DNA of 64,000 nt from Podarcis erhardii (lineage: Eukaryota), in NCBI GenBank assembly GCA_964252035.1, contig OZ176211.1. One strand, 5' to 3'. Below, one piece after another: positions 7,425 through 49,700 of the stretch; the first letter of the stretch is position 1; every line of letters starts with the position of its first letter. Made by a program: the position numbers and the translations under genes. The notes under the pieces were generated by a model. It worked only from the letters and a program-made list of their open reading frames with translations. It did no database searches and was not told where the DNA came from.

Positions 7425-7810
7425 CTTGGGATCACCTGATCCCATATATGCCTTCTAGACCACTTTGATCTGCAGAACTGACACTATTGTAGGTGCCACA
7501 TAGTACTAGCTCTGCAGTTGTAAGAAATCAAGCTTTTAGTGTAGCAGCAGTTATACTTTGGAACTCCCTGCCCATTGACACCAGACAGATGGTTTCATCA
7601 TACTCTTTTCGGCATCTGCTTAAAACATTTTTGTTTCAGCAAGCCAATCCAAACATGTAGAAGTCACATGTGCTTTATCTCTTTTTAGCTACTGTTGGTT
7701 AGAATTGTCTCTTGAAAGTTTTTTAATACCTGGTTTCAACTGGGATTTTTAAAATATTTTTTTTTATAGTGCTAATGTTTCATTTTCCATTATTGTAAAC
7801 TGCTTTGAGG
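7425..7810 (+). mobile_element. Degenerate L2 3' fragment
   Basis: gcttttagtgtagcagc..ctttggaactccctgccc..cttaaaacatttttgtttcagcaagc follows the L2 ORF2-end pattern. Confidence 0.55.
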
Positions 7811-8160
7811 TTTCCTTGCAACAAGATATTTTGTTTATTCAATAAGGAAATAAATATTCCAATCTATTCTGAAATTGTGGGTGTGCAATATGCATTTTCC
7901 AGTAGCACATTCCACCTGAAAAAAAGTCTGTTGAGTTTCTTTATGTGAAAGGGAACATGCCTTTTAGAATAGAATAATTATGTCCCTTGTAGTCTGGTCT
8001 TAATGGAAAACATGCTGTTCCCATAGAACTCAGGACTTGTTACCAAAATGATACAAAATCCCCATATATTAATAATTTGCCACTTTCCCTTGGAGATTAT
8101 TCCATTGCGCTTGGAAACATTTCATGCAGCCTATAGCAAATTCTAAGAAAATGACTTTAC

Positions 8161-8287
8161 CCTGAAGGTTCGCTTTTCCTGTTAGAGAACTTGGCTTCTG
8201 TCCCCTTCTTCTGTTTTGTCCATACACTACACAGTTTGTAGCAACAGCCAAAACCAAAAGGCAAAAGACAGAATGTTTTTTCCACAT
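8161..8287 (-). CDS. COL28A1: COL28A1 first coding exon (signal peptide MWKKHSVFCLLVLAVATNCVVYG...NLQ-G)
   Basis: ATG at 8287, hydrophobic signal peptide, donor CAGG|gtaaag is phase 1 and matches the acceptor at 5855. The exon extends 5' to an acceptor at ~8330. Confidence 0.92.
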
Positions 8288-8877
8288 AGCGACGGGGATT
8301 CAAAAATCAAAGGGACACTTACTGCTCCTGCTAATAAAAACAAAAAGAGCTGTTAATGTCTCGTGCATATTAATAATAAATCTGTAACTACTTAACACAC
8401 ATTTGCTCAATGAATATAATGCAGCCTTACCACTGACCAGAGCCAGCACCCGATAAAAAATATTGGGGGAAGAACAGAAGGGGCGTAGTATATTTCTGGG
8501 AGGGCGAGAAAGAAAGAAAACAGCAGCATATGTTAGTGGCAGAGATGGAATGGCCATCTGTCAGGGATTCTTAAGCTGTGATTCCTGCATTGCAGGGGGT
8601 TGGGCTAGATGACCCTTGGGGTCGCTTCCAACTTTACAATACTATTATTCAATGAATCCAGAAATGGAGGGCAAGGAGAGCAAGTTCCTTGTTTGAGGGC
8701 ATCCCCCCCCCCCCCCCCGTGCCGCCAATTTCCCAGGCTTAAAAAAAGAATAAAATTACTTCCCATTTTTAAAAATTAAAATTACGCTTAAATTATGATC
8801 ATTATCTTTTTAAGCAATGTTCCTTCCATTGTTCTGCTTATTTGCTTTTTGTTTTTGTTTGCTTAATTTTATTTTAC

Positions 8878-8922
<45 letters not shown>

Positions 8923-9155
8923 TTATTATTTATACCCCGCCCATCTGGCTGAGTTTCCCCAGCCACTCTGGGTGGCTCCCAATCAAGTGTTAAAAACAAT
9001 ACAGTGTTTAATATTAAAAACTTCCCTGAACAGGGCTGCCTTCAGATGTCTTTTAAAGATAGGATCACTGCTTATTTCCTTCACATCTAAAGGGAGGGTG
9101 TTCCACAGGGTGGGTGCCACTACCGAGAAGGCCCTCTGTCTGGTTCCCTGTAACC
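8878..9155 (-). mobile_element. L2 3' fragment (second subfamily) with (TAT)n tail
   Basis: RAFSVVAPTLWNTLPLDVKEISSDPIFKRHLKAALFREVF on the minus strand. (AAT)n tract at ~8878-8922. Confidence 0.8.
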
Positions 9156-9213: not shown

Positions 9214-9581
9214 CAGTTATACCTCAGAAGTTGAATAGAGTCTGTTCCGGAAGTCTGTTCGACTTCCGAAATGTGCGACTTCCAAAGCATGGCTTCTGAT
9301 TGGCTGCAGGAGCTTCCTGAAGCCAATCAGAAGCCACAGAAGCCCAGAGGCATAGCTAGGTGGGTGTGATGGGAGCAGTGCACCCCGGGTGCCATCGGGG
9401 CACTGCATGGCGCACCCCATCCCTAGCCCCTATGGGCCCCTATGAGCTGTTTGCCCCGCCCCTGGGCGCCTTGCCCCAGGTGCCCCAGAAGCTTCCTCTG
9501 CCACTGCAGAAGCCCCATCGGACGTTCAGCTTCCAAAAGAACGTCTGAAAACTGGAACACTCAGGAGCCGAGGTACGACTG
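9214..9581. mobile_element. Tc1/mariner (Tigger/pogo-like) MITE, TA-flanked
   Basis: TA|cagttatacctc ... gaggtacgactg|TA. Interrupted by a hAT MITE. Confidence 0.75.
9345..9506. mobile_element. hAT MITE nested in the Tigger-like MITE
   Basis: Perfect 8-bp TSD cagaagcc (9337-9344, 9507-9514). TIRs CAGAGGCATAG / CTCTGCCACTG match at 9 of 11 positions. Confidence 0.8.
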
Positions 9582-41531: not shown

Positions 41532-42426
41532 CTAAATAAAATTTCAAAACACTCATTTTAAAGGCACTTTTAGCCTGCTGCACCTGCCTATCAACACCAC
41601 TATGTCAGTCTTTTGTCAGAAATACTGAAACACTCAGGTAAATACTCCATCTACATGTGGGCATAACTGCATGCTTTAAAACTGTACATGGCAGCCTGTA
41701 AAAACCAAGCAGATTCAAGGTAATATATACAAAATAAGGATATATACCTCCACTCTCCTCCTGTTGCTTCCTCTCATAATTTTTTGGGGGTATTGGGGTT
41801 GTAATTGCCTTGAGTTTTTACAGTTATCCAAGGCAGGGTACCAATATAATAAACTTCATTTGCTAAATATCCTATGAATAATTTTCTATACCACCCCTCC
41901 TGTGTATTTAATGTGTTCCCACTGTAAACAGTTGAAATCACTAGCAGGAATACATTTAACACTTGTAAGTAACACAAACTTTGGATACTATGGATTTATA
42001 ATAGATTACATTACAGTAAAAGAAGCAGGAATAAAATTTTAGAAATGGAACTCATGGAGTGAGGGAGGTCAGAAGCTTCGAGACAAACTCTTTTTTGTTG
42101 AATTGTGTGAATTGTTATGTTTGTTGTGTATAATCAACAATCACTATGTAAAACTCACAATATATATATACAATATTTAATGTGTTCAGACTGCAAACCA
42201 AGCAAGAGATAAATGTTTTGTTTTTAAATAAAGGATGACAAATGATCCTCGACTTCAGCTGTCTCACAAACGGCAACATTAAAGAGCAGGAGCCTTTGGC
42301 GAAAGTTTGTCTGGAGCTAAGCGAGGGATACCATGGGCATTGCGGATGCACCACCCCAAGGGGCCTGCAATGCTCTGCAAGGCAAATCCCCGGGCGGACG
42401 AAGAGGAGTAAGGGAGCCACTCTTAC

Positions 42427-42525
42427 CTTTTCCAGGCGCCCCACGAAACAAACGGGCTTCCCAATGTACTGCGCCAACTGACTTGTGGCTACGCGTACCC
42501 GGGGTCCTTGCAGCACGTCCGCCAT
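42427..42525 (-). CDS. RPA3: RPA3 (replication protein A 14-kDa subunit) exon 1 (99 nt)
   Basis: MADVLQGPRVRVATSQLAQYIGKPVCFVGRLEK|gtaaga. The four exons total 360 nt = 119 aa plus stop. Confidence 0.96.
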
Positions 42526-42529
42526 TTCG

Positions 42530-43290
42530 GAACTGGGCGTCTGAACCAAGGCCGCCTCCCCCCCGCCCTTTGCCTTTTATCCAGGCTACATTGGCGGGAA
42601 ACTTCGACTTCCGCTCGCCGCGCGGGTCACCACGGCAACGGGCGAAGCGCGCAGAGTTCGACGGTCCCAGGGAAAACCTTCCAATACGCTCGCAGAATGT
42701 TCTACACGCAGGCGGCCTTACGTCATTTCCGTGTAGCGGAGAGCGCGTTAGGGAGTGTTTGCGCATGCGCGCGCCAGCTAACTTAGACTGTGATTTTCCT
42801 CAGCCGACGAGGTTACTTCAGTTCATTCGCCGGGAGGTGTCCCTCGTGAACCCGGAACCGGAGGTTGTTGTGGAGAAAAGGCTGCCGGAGGTGCGTATTC
42901 CAGACAGGCAGGTAGGGTCGGCTGTCAGAGAGGCCTCGCTCGTGGCGAAAACAGGAAAGTCGAGGCCGAGGGTTATTTCGTCCTTCGTTTGTGGCGCGCG
43001 GGGGCAGTTGTCGAATAACGCCGGCGGTGTTGTTTTTTTTTTGCGCTTCGACGGTTATATCCGTTAACATTCAGAATGTACGTGCGGATTTGGAACACGC
43101 GCACGCGCGTCGCCAGTTGGGGAGGGGTGTTGTGGAGCTGCTACGTCAGCTGCTCACGTCTGGTGGGCGGAGCTACCCGCGCCAACAAATTCGCTTTACT
43201 GCTTTTTCCACCTTATGGGGCAGAGCTCTTCTGGGTCCTCCTTGAGATGGGGCTATCTACCCATAGATAGTGGCGTAGAGCCACGGGATG
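42530..43290. promoter_or_regulatory. RPA3/UMAD1 bidirectional CpG-island promoter
   Basis: E2F site TTGGCGGGAAA at 42591-42601, NRF1 site TGCGCATGCGC at 42760-42770, CRE-like TTACGTCA at ~42719, ETS-like CCGGAA at ~42852. Confidence 0.85.
42830..42911 (+). other. UMAD1: Probable UMAD1 non-coding exon 1 (start approximate)
   Basis: Donor CAG|GTAGGG at 42912 in the CpG island, upstream of the acceptor at 49683. Confidence 0.55.
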
Positions 43291-44185
43291 ACGTTGAATT
43301 TTGACAGCCTACCTGTCTGGTCTTCTGTGTATAAATTAACGTCTGAACTGGTGACCCATAGAATAGAGGGGTGTCAAGAAGAAAACAAGGGTTGGCATCC
43401 CATTCAGAGAAACTTAGTTGATTAGTAGTTTGCGGCTTAGGTGATTGATTAATTCGTTAAATTCAAATATGTCAAAACAAGCAGGAAATGGAGTCTCTCT
43501 TTTTCTAGATTATTTATTCATTTATCACGGCAGGCAAGGGTGGATATGCTCATCGTAAGATGGCACGTGCTATCTGTGGTTTTTGTAAGTTCTTGTATAT
43601 AAAAAAAGTTTGGTTGTTTTCCAAAGCTGCTGCTTGTTAATTTTAATTAGTTAATATACTGTAATCTGCAAATCAACTAAAACGTTGCATCCCAAGAAAC
43701 ATGTATCTTGGCGGAGGGAGGGGGGAATGCAGTAGAAGTAAGTTTTGGAGACAACTGTGTGCTCTGTCTTGAAACATTACATTGTTTATGTGAGTAGATC
43801 ACTGTGAGTTATGGGATTGGCTAGGTTTAATCATGTGTCAGAGGTGGTCATACATTATTGCATTTGGTTAGCCCCTGTAAATGAACTGTTCACCTGAAGA
43901 AACTACTTCTTGAAAAATTATTTGCCCTCAAAATCTCCATTACCTAAGATATTTGTATTTGCCATAGAAAGAACCAATTTTTGTAAACCTTCAGTGCTGA
44001 TTGGCTACAAGCAATTTTTATTTGCCAAAGGCAAAGATACCTGTATCCCTTTTTACTACAAAGGAATTTCAGAAATAGACTGGAAAGAGAAGCTGCTGAA
44101 TTACAACTTATCACCAAACTTAAAACCATGGAGAAACCTGGTCTGAACAAAGACCTTGGATTCTTATCTCATTATACATGACAAA

Positions 44186-44490
44186 GCCATTTTTCACCTT
44201 TTCACCCCTTGCTTTTTCCTGTAAGACCTATTGCAGTCGTTAAGAGTCGTCAACAGGCTCATCACAGCTATCTGCCAATCACCCATTCCCACCACCCTTC
44301 TGAGTAATACCCCTCCCCACCTTCTCACTATATAGAAGGGTCTGGAAACTTCTGTTTCAGTGTATCTGAAGAAGTGTGCATGCACACGAAAGCTCATACC
44401 AAGAACTGACTTAGTTGGTCTTTAAGGTGCTACTGGAAGGAATTTGTTTTGTTTTGACTATGGCAGACCAACACGGCTACCTATCTGTAA
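44186..44490 (+). mobile_element. Penelope-like element terminal fragment, copy 2
   Basis: Near-identical to 18909-19217 in opposite orientation; contains a hammerhead. Confidence 0.8.
44362..44399 (+). ncRNA. Minimal type I hammerhead ribozyme motif (predicted cleavage after C44395)
   Basis: GTATCTGAAGAAGTGTGCATGCACACGAAAGCTCATAC, identical to the 19004-19041 copy. Confidence 0.8.
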
Positions 44491-44673
44491 ATGTTTATTA
44501 AGATAGTCTTTAAATTTCTTCCAATCTTCTTCCACTGTGGGAAGTAAGGGAATGGATTTGCTGATTACATAATGAAATTGGAATACAGAAGGGGGAGGTG
44601 TGAGGAGGTCGGAGAAATTAGGTTCAAGAAAATAAGGATGGAAATTATACTTTTTTTTTGTTTTGTTTGTTTG
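44491..44673 (+). mobile_element. L1-clade 3' end with 5' inversion (continues at 47556-47609)
   Basis: 44491-44533 reverse-complements to EEDWKKFKDYLNKH, and 44536+ continues C-G-K-stop. The 3' UTR motif gggag..gtgagga.gtc is shared with the L1 at 9614. Confidence 0.72.
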
Positions 44674-45585
44674 CTTCGCCGTGCGTGTGGGGAGGGCTTC
44701 CCCCTGCTAGCCCATTCTCCATCTTGGGCTTGGGGACGGGCCCCAGACTCCACCTCAGCATATAAGGCTTCAAGGAGGCCTCGGAACACCACTGCTGCCG
44801 CTTCGCCGTGCGTGTGGGGAGGGCTTCCCCCTGCAGGCCCATTCTCCATCTTGGGCTTGGGGACGGGCCCCAGACTCCACCTCAGCATATAAGGCTTCAA
44901 GGAGGCCTCGGAACACCACTGCTGCCACTTCGCCGTGCGTGTGGGGAGGGCTTCCCCCTGCAGGCCCATTTTCCACCTTGGGCTTGGGGACGGGCCCCAG
45001 ACTCCACCTCAGCATAAAAGACTCCAAGTAGGCCTGGGACACTGCTGCTGCCGCTTTGCCGGTGAGTCTTGGGGAGGACCGCTCCCCCTGCAAGCCCATT
45101 CTCCACCTTGGGCCTGGGGGCGGGCCCCAGACTCCATCTCAGCATATAAGGCTTCAAGGAGGCCTTGGAACACCACTGCTGCCGCTTTGCCGTGCGTGTG
45201 GGGAGGGCTTCCCCCTGCTAGCCCATTCTCCATCTTGGGCTTGGGGACGGGCCCCAGACTCCACCTCAGCATAAAAGACTCCAAGTAGGCCCGGGACACT
45301 GCTGCTGCCGCTTTGCCGGTGAGTCTTGGGGAGGACCGCTCCCCCTGCTAGCCCATTCTCCATCTTGGGCTTGGGGACGGGCCCCAGACTCCACCTCAGC
45401 ATATAAGGCTTCAAGGAGGCCTCGGAACACCACTGCTGCCGCTTCGCCGTGCGTGTGGGGAGGGCTTCCCCCTGCTAGCCCATTCTCCATCTTGGGCTTG
45501 GGGACGGGCCCCAGACTCCACCTCAGCATATAAGGCTTCAAGGAGGCCTCGGAACACCACTGCTGCCACTTCGCCGTGCGTGTGG
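44674..45585. repeat. GC-rich tandem array, 7 full units of 126-131 bp plus a 17-nt partial unit
   Basis: Unit starts at 44674, 44801, 44928, 45054, 45185, 45311, 45442 and 45569. Confidence 0.95.
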
Positions 45586-47366
45586 CGCAATTATTTAGTA
45601 TAATTCGGTCTTTAACGTCCCTCGAAGGACAGCCAAATTTAAATAACAATTTGACACACAGCTGTGAGGCATTTGCGAGCTTTTTTGCGGAGAAGGTCTT
45701 GTTGCTCCGCCATGACCTCCCTGCCAATTTGGATACAATAAAGGAACTGGAGGCCCCTCGACTGCCCTCGGGTTCAGTATTGGACCACTTTGACCGGATA
45801 TCCCCAGCCGATGTGGACAGACTCCTCCGAGCTGGAAAGCCCACCACATGTCCTCTCGACCCGTGCCCGTCCTGGCTGATTAGAGCGTGTCCAGACGAGG
45901 TGCGGGCCCCCCTGGGGGATATCATCAATCTGTCCCTTGGCACCGGGACATTCCCAGGGGAACTGAAGGAGGCAGTGGTGCGCCCGCTCTTAAAGAAAAC
46001 ATCATTAGATCCCTTAGATCTATCCAATTACCGCCCGGTTTCGAATCTTCCATTCCTGGGTAAGGTGATTGAGAGAGCGGTTGCTGAACAGCTTGGTAGG
46101 TTTCTGGATGAAACATCGGCTCTGGATCCATTCCAGTCCGGCTTCCGCGCTGGTCATGGGACTGAGACGGCTCTGGTCGCCCTAACAGATGATCTCCGCA
46201 GGCAGCTGGATCGAGGCGGGTCGGGGCTGCTGATTCTTCTAGACCTGTCAGCAGCCTTCGACATGGTCGATCACGAACTCCTGGACCACCGCCTTGCCGA
46301 CGTGGGGATCCAGGGCACAGTCCTTCAATGGCTGCGCTCGTTTCTCTCCGGTCGGGGACAGAGGGTGGCGCTTGGGGGGGAATTGTCATCCCGCCACTCC
46401 TTGGTGTGTGGTGTGCCCCAGGGTGCAATACTCTCCCCAATGCTTTTTAACATCTTTATGCGCCCCCTCGCCCAGCTTGTCCGGAGTTTTGGGCTGGGCT
46501 GCCATCAGTATGCTGATGACACCCAACTCTATCTGTTGATGGACGGCCACCCGGACTCTGCCCCAGACACACTGATCAGATGCTTGGAGGCTGTGGCTGG
46601 ATGGTTACGTGGGAGCCGGCTGAAGTTAAATCCTTCGAAGACAGAGGTCCTCTGGCTGGGACGGGACGACAGGGGGCTGAGGGGGCAACTCCCATCTCTT
46701 GCGGGGGTGCAATTAGTGCCAGCACCGTCCGTTAAGAGTTTGGGTGTAATCTTCGATACCTCCCTCTCCATGGAGGCGCAGATTGCAGCTATAACAAAGG
46801 CGGCATTCTTTCATCTCCGCCAAGCTAAGCAGTTGGCTCCTTACCTCTCACGCCCTGACCTAGCCACTGTGATCCACGCGACGGTCACCTCCAGACTGGA
46901 TTATTGTAACTCGCTCTACGTGGGGCTGCCCTTGAGACTGACCCAGAAACTCCAGCGGGTGCAAAATGCTGCAGCGAGACTCCTTACGGGGTCTTCGCTT
47001 AGAGATCACATTCATCCGGTGCTATACCAGCTGCACTGGCTCCCGGTGGAGTACAGGATCAGGTTTAAGGTGCTGGTTTTAACCTTCAAAGCCCTATACG
47101 GCCTAGGGCCCTCGTACCTACGGGACCGCCTCTCCTGGTATGCCCCACAGAGGAACTTACGATCTTCAAATAAAAACATCTTGAAGGTCCCAAGCCACAG
47201 AGAGGTTAGGCTGGCCTCAACTAGAGCCAGGGCTTTTTCGGCTGCGGCTCCAACCTGGTGGAACGCTCTCTCACAAGAGACAAGGGCCCTGCAGGACTTG
47301 ACATCTTTCCGCAGGGCCTGCAAGACAGAGCTGTTCCACCTGGCCTTTGGTCAGGGCGCAGCCTGA
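45576..47366 (+). CDS. L2-clade LINE ORF2 fragment: complete reverse transcriptase domain and C-terminus, no endonuclease
   Basis: 596-codon open frame with YRPVSNLPFLGKVIE, QSGFR, LLDLSAAFD, GVPQGAILSP, YADD (46509-46520) and LDYCNSL...QNAAARL. The GTG start lies in the array and is not a native start. Confidence 0.93.
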   Translation: MRVAQLFSIIRSLTSLEGQPNLNNNLTHSCEAFASFFAEKVLLLRHDLPANLDTIKELEAPRLPSGSVLDHFDRISPADVDRLLRAGKPTTCPLDPCPSWLIRACPDEVRAPLGDIINLSLGTGTFPGELKEAVVRPLLKKTSLDPLDLSNYRPVSNLPFLGKVIERAVAEQLGRFLDETSALDPFQSGFRAGHGTETALVALTDDLRRQLDRGGSGLLILLDLSAAFDMVDHELLDHRLADVGIQGTVLQWLRSFLSGRGQRVALGGELSSRHSLVCGVPQGAILSPMLFNIFMRPLAQLVRSFGLGCHQYADDTQLYLLMDGHPDSAPDTLIRCLEAVAGWLRGSRLKLNPSKTEVLWLGRDDRGLRGQLPSLAGVQLVPAPSVKSLGVIFDTSLSMEAQIAAITKAAFFHLRQAKQLAPYLSRPDLATVIHATVTSRLDYCNSLYVGLPLRLTQKLQRVQNAAARLLTGSSLRDHIHPVLYQLHWLPVEYRIRFKVLVLTFKALYGLGPSYLRDRLSWYAPQRNLRSSNKNILKVPSHREVRLASTRARAFSAAAPTWWNALSQETRALQDLTSFRRACKTELFHLAFGQGAA

Positions 47367-47555
47367 CTCCCTCCTCTGGCAATCTTTACAAAACTTTAGT
47401 TTATGGTTGCCATCAATTTTGATTTTAATTCATTTTAATCCATTTTTATAATGTTTTATAATGTTGTACTGTTTTAGTGTTGTTAGCCGCCCTGAGCCCG
47501 GCTTCGGCTGGGGAGGGCGGGATATAAATAAAATTTATTATTATTATTATTATTA
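45586..47555 (+). mobile_element. Young 5'-truncated L2 LINE with 3' stem-loop and (TAT)n tail
   Basis: Intact ORF, 3' UTR hairpin at 47487-47520, (tta)n tail at ~47535-47555. Confidence 0.92.
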
Positions 47556-47609
47556 GTGTATGTTTTTATTGTTAAACTTTAATAAATATCATTTTTTTTA
47601 AAAAAAAAA
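47556..47609 (+). mobile_element. Distal 3' end and poly(A) of the interrupted L1
   Basis: T-rich tract, AATAAA at ~47581 and an A run, resembling the end of the L1 at 10060-10119. Confidence 0.6.
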
Positions 47610-48649
47610 GATAAGGAAGACGCTTCTACAAAAGTTAGAGGAATTATTGGTTTCAGTAAGCAGCCTTCAGGATTCAAAGACCTTCATGTGCATAAGTCCA
47701 CTATTCCTTAAAAGAGCCCTACAAGTTAGGTTCAGTATTACTGTTCCTATATACGTGTGTATGAGTTGTATTCAATATTACCCCTACTCAGGGTAGACCC
47801 ATTGGAAAAAACAATCAAGACTGAGCATCCCCCCCATACCTTCATTCAAGATGTTGAACAACAATGGGCCCAGGACAGACATGTAGACTGTTAATAATTT
47901 TCAGCGTTATTTTAAAAGAGCAGAAGCCAGAGTATTTCCATTGGGCATTGGAACACACCTAGACCTATAACAAAAAGTTTTGCAATCAAAATATTGCAGT
48001 TTATGAGTTTTGGTAGGACTTTTAGTGTGCTTTAATGCAGCTTTGTAGAAGTCTAGTGGCCTGGTTTATCAAAATGAAAGTGTGAACTCTTTCTTTCATT
48101 CTTAAATATAATCTAAATTTTGTGATTGCAGATGAAGTTTTGAAATCCTGATACTAACATGTGAGCTTTAGTAACTCTGTGTTTTCCTCCCTTTTAGCCT
48201 AGTGTATAAAGGAAGGACATCTTTGCAGTTCAAGAAGAGTACTTCATAGTCAAGCATTTGGAAGGAAGTCAATGCTTGGAGCTGCTGAAAGTGAAAAGGC
48301 AAGTACTGCAGGATTTAGGAAGAGAGAAAGACATATCTGCACAACAGATTGGGAACTGATAGGAAGAGAAAGGTTATGGGGCAGTTTCCAACTCCCTCAT
48401 TCCATCAGCTCAAGGATTTGTGTTTGTGCAACAAGACTTTCCCCATGCGCTCTGCCCGTGCACCCCCTCAAAATCTGCTCTGGAGGGTTGTGAGAACCCA
48501 CTGAACAGATTTTGGTGGCACACGGGGATGAAGGGGGTGGGGAAGCTCCATTGTGCAAGTAGAAATCCTTGCAGTGATAGGAGGCGTACTTACTGTTACA
48601 TGGAATGAAAGCTATTAGGTTAAGGATCACCTTACTTATAAAAGAACTA

Positions 48650-48875
48650 CAGTGGTACTTTGGGTTACATACGCTTCAGGTTACAGACTCCGCTAACCCA
48701 GAAATAATACCTCGGGTTAAGAACTTTGCTTCAGGATGAGAACAGAAATCATGCTCCGGTGGTGCGGCAGCAGCAGGAGGCCCCATTAGCTAAAGTGGTG
48801 CTTCAGGTTAAGAACAGTTTCAGGTTAAGAACGGACCTCCGGAATGAATTAAGTACTTAACCCGAGGTACCACTG
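48650..48875. mobile_element. Tigger-like MITE (225-bp family)
   Basis: TA|cagtggtactttggg ... cccgaggtaccactg|TA. Confidence 0.9.
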
Positions 48876-49700
48876 TATTGTTTTGTTTCTTACTATGCTA
48901 TTTTTGTGTCTTTATATTGTAAAACATTCTCAGGTCCTTGGATGAAAGGCAGTACTGAAATTTTAATAATTATAATAATGTGGGATAGATTTTAAATAAA
49001 CAAATAATTAAAACAGGTCATTTCATGACTTAACTTAGTTTAGAATATGTCATCCTGTTAAATCAGGGGTTGCCAACCTTTTTCGAGAGGGTGCTGTAGG
49101 CCCCAGCCACAAAATGCCTGCCATGGGGTGGGTGGCATAACACAAAAAGAGAAGAGCGCAGTCATTGCTGCTGCTGCTGCTGCTTGCTTCCATACCCCAC
49201 CCCACAGACAACCTTAGGTTTAGCATGGAAAGTCAGTTATGCCCTGCTGGTCCTGACTCTGGGGAATCACACAGTATTGATTTCTCTGTAACACACATAA
49301 TTATTTTGCTTGACAGTAAAAATGCTCTTCACATAATCAGATGGTGTGCTGATTAAAATATTTTTATGATGGAAAATCTAATATTATCTTGACTAACTTT
49401 TTCCAGTGCTTGAGTTATTTTTCCAGGTGTCAGAGGTTGAGACACAGCCAACGCTGCTTGGGTGTACATAAACTCATATTTCTTGAACTGAGCAATAATG
49501 AACAACTGACTTGTATCTCTCTGGTGTTCTCTGTTTGCTCCTGCAGGATCCTCCCCCAGTCCAAGTCTCTAATCTTAGAACTTGATGTTAAGAGCATTTC
49601 ATAATGTTAATTTTGATGATGCCAGAATTGTGTAAGTTTTTTTTTACCATCACTTGACCCATTTCTCACCTTTTTGTTTCTAGACCTCTATTTCAAAAAG

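Follow-up and report, generated by a model that had tools for sequence, protein, structure and literature searches.

The L1 elements of mouse and rat, which belong to the long interspersed nuclear elements (LINEs), carry a 5' untranslated region (5' UTR) in which tandem monomers precede a tether measuring about 250 bp, the monomers being classified as A, Tf, Gf and F types; for the 5' UTRs of lizard L1 elements, no tandem duplication has been reported (PMC5381506). LINEs of the L2 type are known to recognise their own 3' tail (PMC4176376). In the open-access literature, no description was found of tandem monomers in the 5' UTR of an L2 element, nor of a 127-bp satellite of Podarcis. Here, a 64,000-nt stretch of the genome of the wall lizard Podarcis erhardii (contig OZ176211.1 of assembly GCA_964252035.1), hereafter referred to as the window, was analysed, in which a GC-rich array with a unit of about 127 bp (44673-45585) is fused to the reverse transcriptase (RT) frame of an L2-type LINE. 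With a probability of roughly 0.8, the array is the tandem-monomer 5' UTR of the L2 subfamily to which this element belongs, the window copy having been internally deleted, nested in a short poly(A) retroposon, here termed X, and carried to its present site within a composite retrocopy.

The window was compared with four loci of P. lilfordi holding the same L2 subfamily (L001, L008, L009 and L010). Three of these copies (L001, L009 and L010) span residues 1–994 of the second open reading frame (ORF2), all of them in frames broken by stops or frameshifts, and the fourth, L008, is cut off at ORF2 residue 23. The orthologous locus was located in P. lilfordi, P. muralis, P. raffonei, Lacerta agilis and Zootoca vivipara by means of the open reading frame (ORF) of RPA3 exon 1 and its protein cluster. 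Similarity between the array and the leaders of the relatives was evaluated by blastn, by nhmmer and by local alignment against dinucleotide shuffles. Abundance was estimated as summed Logan contig depth in three lizard species, and these figures are sums over contigs and not true copy numbers. The L2 clade label is a putative one, carried over from the initial annotation of the window, and the database names of the relatives are generic.

A single array, with a period of 127 bp, 7.1 copies and 89% matches, was detected by Tandem Repeats Finder (TRF), together with a second, higher-order period of 257 bp. The units measure, in order, 127, 127, 126, 131, 126, 131 and 127 nt and are followed by an 18-nt partial eighth, as the initial annotation had read them (seven GC-rich units plus a partial one). 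In the identity matrix, units 1 and 7 are identical and units 3/5 and 4/6 pair at 94–95%, two unit subtypes alternating in the middle of the array. The GC content of the array is 0.64 and its CpG observed/expected ratio is 0.41. Every unit contains a TATA-like word on the plus strand, either CATATAAG or CATAAAAG, and CCAAG(A/G)TGG on the minus strand; both motifs had already been recognised in each unit, and their presence throughout is a trivial consequence of the units being repeats. The TATA-like word is located about 40 nt ahead of the unit boundary where the window copy has its start. This monomer boundary carries CTGCTGCC, and the L2 copy of L009 starts in the same unit-boundary motif as the window copy.

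No second occurrence of the unit was found anywhere in the 64-kb window, and no ATG is present on the plus strand of the array. An Rfam scan of positions 43900-47800, admitting E-values up to 0.1, gave no match. An exact 25-mer of the unit was likewise without hits among metagenome contigs, as is to be expected of a collection that includes no lizard DNA. A word search of the stop-free 131-aa translation of the array against recorded proteins returned 81 candidates, none of them significant, and no array-derived proteins of 72–229 aa were found recorded.

An independent L2 copy, L010, contains units like those of the window. About 1.5 of them, oriented as in the window, occupy positions 8876-9041 of its 5' UTR, some 200 nt ahead of the ORF2 AUG codon (ATG at 9238), and the L2 DNA of this copy is about 92% identical to that of the window. 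By blastn, the array aligns with L010 8895-9012 on the plus strand at 70–76% identity (E = 2.9e-11); in local alignment the z score is about 11, all 500 dinucleotide shuffles score lower, and the antisense alignment does no better than background. Since the same monomer type precedes the tether and ORF2 in L010, the array is read as the own leader of the L2 element. The initial annotation had presented the fusion as the best candidate for an undescribed system, and had stated beforehand that a match to the normal 5' region of an L2 would take this novelty away; L010 provides that match.

An origin by template switching from a satellite or from an inverted part of the element had also been put forward. 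In such a scheme, the RNA of an unrelated satellite or minisatellite would have been joined to a 5'-truncated L2 cDNA, giving rise to a one-off chimera. This is compatible with the entry of array and L2 into X as a single insertion, with the overlap of only 2 nt at their joint, like that of template jumps, and with the multi-copy nature of the monomer. Nevertheless, it does not account for the same monomer type standing in sense orientation in the 5' UTR of L010, beside a homologous tether, nor for the tandem monomers that other copies of the subfamily carry at that position, and an inverted origin is at odds with the background antisense score. We thus regard a satellite chimera as very improbable.

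The leaders of the other relatives are organised in a comparable way. Upstream of their ORF2 ATG (9263 and 8240, respectively), L009 and L001 have about 490 nt in common, in which tandem GC-rich units are followed by a T-rich spacer of about 250 nt. In L009, a 115-nt unit is repeated 2.1 times at 96% identity (8589-8830) and is followed by degenerate units of 101, 55 and 83 nt up to position ~9010, and units of the L009 type are carried by L001 at 7758-8003. The T-rich tethers of L009, L001 and L010 (200–250 nt) align with each other up to the ORF2 ATG. Head-to-tail monomers at the 5' end, separated from the ORF by a non-repeated tether, are thus present in all three relatives. When aligned together, the three types of monomer are collinear, with L010 as the intermediate. 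Direct homology of the array with the monomer type of L009 and L001 was considered and is not claimed; what is proposed is collinearity through L010. No ORF1 was seen between the 5' UTR and the 994-aa ORF in L001, L009 and L010. A more distant L2 in locus L002 (10537-11003) has a 151-aa ORF1 that ends in a TGA-CAG-TTA-ATG junction. In L009, a further GC-rich and partly palindromic 108-nt unit is repeated 2.2 times (8008-8248) about 340 nt upstream of the 5' end of the L2, and is unrelated to the L2 monomers.

In L001, L009 and L010, as members of a young wall-lizard subfamily, the element consists of GC-rich monomers of about 100–130 nt (1.5 to ~4 units), a T-rich tether of 200–250 nt, the 994-aa ORF, a 3' UTR and an (ATT)n tail. 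By analogy with the murine L1 elements, the monomers may act as the internal promoter of the L2. The consensus 5' splice-site word G/GTGAGT occurs in the 131-nt subtype of the window array (45059-45065 and 45316-45322) and in the monomers of L009 (at ~8630-8640). Leaders of human L1 elements splice out of the element, and RNAs starting in the lizard monomers could likewise splice out of the L2 if this word were used as a donor.

In the three lizard species, the bins of the array reached a summed contig depth of ~2e3-1e5, with one bin far lower, compared with ~18–330 for the single-copy flank and 7e4-4e6 for the L2 bins. In order of magnitude, these figures correspond to units numbering in the hundreds, or possibly a thousand and above, in each genome, a number that would fit some few hundred long L2 copies contributing their 5' ends. 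In two of the three species the contigs of the flank match only from position 47609 onward, as expected of an empty site, and the monomers of these species therefore sit elsewhere in the genome. The same data bear on the possibility that the L2 inserted into, or next to, a local array that was already there, or that an array grew locally from target DNA after the insertion. Indeed, the units are very alike, with units 1 and 7 identical, which points to recent unequal exchange or duplication within the array. On the other hand, the monomer is abundant in species without an insertion at this locus, and the sequences flanking array and L2 are contiguous in the X copy of L009 (see below), so that no array existed at the target. 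A local origin is therefore hardly credible.

Downstream of the array, and starting with a GTG in its last, partial unit, an ORF of 596 codons without internal stop was confirmed at 45576-47366; it matches Pfam RVT_1 (E = 3.7e-37) and its YADD motif is intact. The encoded sequence is 96% identical over 595 aa to the P. muralis protein P0001, and 96% identical to both P0001 and P0125 from residue 402 on. The P. muralis relatives of this frame fall in one 90%-identity cluster of 101 members, the full-length members having 994 residues; in the full-length P0125, an Exo_endo_phos endonuclease is found at residues 65–260 and the RT at residues 541–790. The window L2 begins at ORF2 residue 402 and comes without the APE-type endonuclease expected of an L2. 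Its RT domain is related to that of the family and its 3' UTR ends in a short tandem repeat, not in poly(A): the (ATT)n run closes the element at 47555, and the same type of tail is present in L009 (12640-12677). The window copy is, hence, a defective and not autonomous member of L2. At the nucleotide level it is 92–94% identical to the four P. lilfordi copies.

Homology with L2 begins at 45584/45585. At this point ...CTCGCCCGGCGCAATTA is found in the normal copies and ...GTGCGTGTGGCGCAATTA in the window, as deduced from the comparison with L001, L008 and L009 and in agreement with the loose ends of contigs. The joint between array and L2 is seamless, with a 2-nt GG overlap, and the direct run of one into the other noticed earlier is thereby verified. 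The element had been taken as 5'-truncated; it is instead internally deleted, with its 5' monomers kept. The window copy would have retained its 5' end, with seven monomers, as well as 2 kb at the 3' side; the missing part of about 1.5 kb comprises the remainder of one monomer, the tether and ORF2 codons 1–401. Most likely, the deletion would have arisen from a jump of the RT within the L2 RNA during insertion, the alternative being a deletion of DNA in a parent copy; both fit the GG overlap and are indistinguishable here. Splicing was discarded as the origin of the joint: an AG does stand just before the breakpoint in normal L2 copies, but neither a GT nor a GC donor is present on the array side at 45586.

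The first in-frame ATG of the RT frame is found at 46263 and would give a product of 367 aa, starting about 85 residues inside the RVT_1 match. Six short ATG ORFs, all out of frame, precede it. The initial annotation had proposed that the array is a monomeric promoter or leader that re-arms a truncated RT: the leader is borne out by the homology with L010, whereas the re-arming is not, as no in-frame ATG stands ahead of the RT domain. Initiation at the GTG codon is equally unsupported. An open RT frame in a copy only a few percent away from its relatives is unremarkable and probably reflects youth, not use. The window copy appears to be a dead, non-autonomous derivative.

A protein model of P. 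muralis, P0007, has 11 N-terminal residues unrelated to L2 followed by L2 sequence from residue 403, one codon off the breakpoint of the window. P0007 may represent the donor locus's orthologue, another member of a family of deletion derivatives, or a spliced model. This touches on a different reading of the fusion, according to which monomers plus RT would form a propagating non-autonomous family, transcribed from the monomers, mobilised in trans by the proteins of full-length L2 elements and perhaps translating its RT from a non-AUG codon. The intact 596-codon frame with its YADD motif and the near coincidence of the two breakpoints would suit such a family, and the recognition by L2-type LINEs of their own 3' tail (PMC4176376) would make mobilisation in trans possible in principle. 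However, the RT domain is preceded by no in-frame ATG and by the six out-of-frame ORFs; the window copy did not use its L2 tail to move but was carried along in a poly(A) retrocopy, the start of which lies 620 nt upstream of the array; the N-terminus of P0007 may be an unrelated exon, or the model may represent the orthologous donor locus; and intact frames are no rarity among copies 4% from their relatives. A propagating family of this sort is, in our opinion, unlikely. It is quite doubtful, too, that the endonuclease-less derivative is the founder or a member of a monomer-transcribed and trans-mobilised non-autonomous L2 family, with a possibly non-AUG RT and P0007 as its second member.

Array and L2 are nested in X. 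The sequences on their two sides are the halves of this short poly(A) retroposon, which is contiguous in L009 (12341-12543); when joined, the halves align with L009 12342-12542. The uninterrupted copy in L009 is tailed by A10 and flanked by a perfect target-site duplication (TSD) of 17 bp. As X is uninterrupted in L009, the array was not part of the target DNA and came into X together with the L2, in one event. No TSD is visible around array and L2 inside X. The earlier statement that the two together interrupt one poly(A)-type LINE tail, with no visible TSD, was therefore essentially right. A LINE in L002 has a 3' end similar to the T-rich part of X. X is about 200 nt long. The starts of the window and L009 copies all but coincide, so that X may constitute a discrete L1-dependent family rather than a randomly truncated LINE tail. 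About 22–31 contigs per run cover position 44568 in its 5' half, and the contig depth suggests hundreds to thousands of copies of X.

The nested element is in turn part of a larger insertion, absent from the initial annotation: array, L2 and about 670 bp of other repeats arrived as one block of 3.56 kb. Window positions 42500-44052 and 47609-49500 are adjacent in all five of the other lacertid genomes, where they are separated by 29–30 conserved bases; in the lineage of the window, 3,557 bp have replaced these 29–30 ancestral bases. From 5' to 3', the block is composed of an unassigned repeat, a SINE (short interspersed nuclear element), an antisense LINE fragment, the 5' half of X, the array, the deleted L2 and the 3' half of X (Table 1). 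At its 3' edge, an AATAAA is followed 13 nt later by A10, as in the poly(A)-tailed retrocopies made by L1, and the empty sites show a loss of 29–30 nt with no duplication. The block probably works like a retrocopy, though not demonstrably a canonical one. As the transcript would have started at least 620 nt upstream of the first monomer, the RNA of the inserted block was not started by the array.

Table 1. Features of the composite insertion and of the elements nested in it (window positions).
Feature	Position	Strand	Basis
Composite insertion, 3,557 bp, lineage-specific	44053-47609	+	Flanks adjacent in five lacertid genomes
Unassigned high-copy repeat, 5' edge	44053-44185		Summed contig depth ~1e6 in three lizard runs; no match in fetched loci
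SINE copy	44186-44489	+	94% identity with window 19217-18903; divergence of ~90 contigs per run immediately beyond 44490
Piece of another LINE's 3' region, antisense	44490-44537	-	87.5% identical to L002 6668-6715, downstream of a minus-strand RVT_1 ORF; contig loose ends agree
X, 5' half, like the 3' end of an L1-type LINE	44538-44672	+	Alignment to L009 12342-12456, 73%
L2 5' UTR monomer array (probable), 7 units of 126–131 bp plus 18-nt partial, two subtypes	44673-45585	+	TRF, identity matrix, homology to L010
Deletion joint, GG microhomology	45584-45585	+	Comparison with L001, L008 and L009; contig loose ends of normal L2
L2 ORF2 codons ~402–994, RT and C-terminal part, stop-free	45586-47366	+	96% identity to P0001/P0125; RVT_1
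L2 3' UTR with terminal (ATT)n	47367-47555	+	Collinear with L001, L008, L009 and L010 at 92–94%
X, 3' half, with AATAAA (47581-47586) and A10 (47600-47609); 3' edge of the composite insertion	47556-47609	+	Alignment to L009 12512-12542; other genomes resume at 47609/47610

As for the transport step alone, the 3.56-kb block might have arrived as DNA, by ectopic repair or segmental duplication. The lack of a TSD, the loss of 29–30 target bases and a target without a clear TTTT/A cleavage motif would all fit such a route. Against it, the block ends exactly at A10, 13 nt after AATAAA, which is the natural end of X as in L009. Target deletions without TSD are a known minority outcome of L1 insertion. 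A transfer as DNA is accordingly judged rather unlikely. A cut-and-paste transposon carrying the GC-rich array was also considered and rejected, the 3.56-kb block having neither terminal inverted repeats nor a TSD.

The favoured reading, a recent composite retrocopy of an internally deleted L2 with its own leader, would involve the following steps. The deleted L2 had entered retroposon X at some other locus, as the nesting shows. An RNA polymerase II transcript would then have crossed this donor locus and ended at the AATAAA belonging to X, and the poly(A)-dependent machinery of L1 type would have copied it into the intron of UMAD1, with the deletion of 29 target bases and no TSD.

Several observations weigh against this interpretation. 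The monomers of L009 and L001, which represent the commoner type, are not significantly similar to the array (no match by nhmmer; z of about 2 in local alignment, p ~0.03-0.14), and only one other locus, L010, links the monomer type of the window to an L2. The depths are contig sums, and one contig in a run guessed to be RNA says little on promoter activity. Lastly, the insertion has no TSD and no clear L1 cleavage motif, its poly(A) end being the sole pointer to an RNA route.

The insertion lies in an intron of UMAD1, about 1.5 kb from the CpG island of RPA3; the first exon of RPA3 and this island are at ~42300-43300 on the minus strand. In RPA3 exon 1 (42115-42549, minus strand), 31 of 35 aligned residues are common with RPA3 of P. 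lilfordi. The flanks of the window are 96–98% identical to P. raffonei and P. lilfordi and ~92–97% to P. muralis. A hammerhead-like motif at 44362-44399 sits in the SINE of the new block, and is thus a feature of a recently transported SINE and not an old feature of UMAD1.

Compared with systems already described, the fusion in the window is itself an ordinary defective LINE copy. As in other internally deleted LINEs, the 5' end and a 3' part are kept, an internal block is gone and the joint shows a microhomology of 2 nt; what differs is that the deletion has left a long open RT frame flush with a repeated leader, thus giving the appearance of a designed fusion. The whole block resembles the L1-mediated retrocopies of read-through or composite transcripts in its AATAAA and poly(A) edge, in the mosaic of older repeats in both orientations and in its absence from sister species, and it differs from them in having no TSD, in the deletion of 29–30 target bases and in a donor locus that was not found. 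With the SVA and LAVA composites, which contain a variable number of tandem repeats, it shares a SINE piece, an antisense LINE piece, a GC-rich array, a retroelement fragment, an AATAAA and poly(A); in contrast to them, the composite of the window shows no sign of recurring as a family, and its array is more simply explained as the leader of the L2 itself. The locus would nonetheless offer a clean and dated composite retrocopy of 3.56 kb, through which a candidate promoter array rich in GC has come to lie at about 1.5 kb from the CpG-island promoter of RPA3.

The closest parallel to the leader remains the one in mouse and rat L1. In both cases GC-rich tandem units stand at the 5' end in a number that varies from copy to copy (1.5 to 7 in the lizard L2), a non-repeated tether links them to the ORF (200–250 nt in the lizard L2), and the monomer types found on one ORF lineage are unalignable or highly diverged. 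The lizard element differs in being of L2 type, with a microsatellite tail and just one long ORF, an ORF1 not having been seen in L001, L009 and L010, and its units measure 100–130 nt, against about 200 nt in mouse, with a promoter role that is putative. The wall lizards would hence possess an LINE of the L2 clade with a murine-L1-style 5' UTR of monomers and tether, and with at least two monomer types on one ORF lineage. This would represent a convergent promoter architecture in a distant LINE clade, and a second system, besides the murine L1, in which to ask why tandem monomers evolve, for instance as a buffer against 5' truncation or through promoter turnover.

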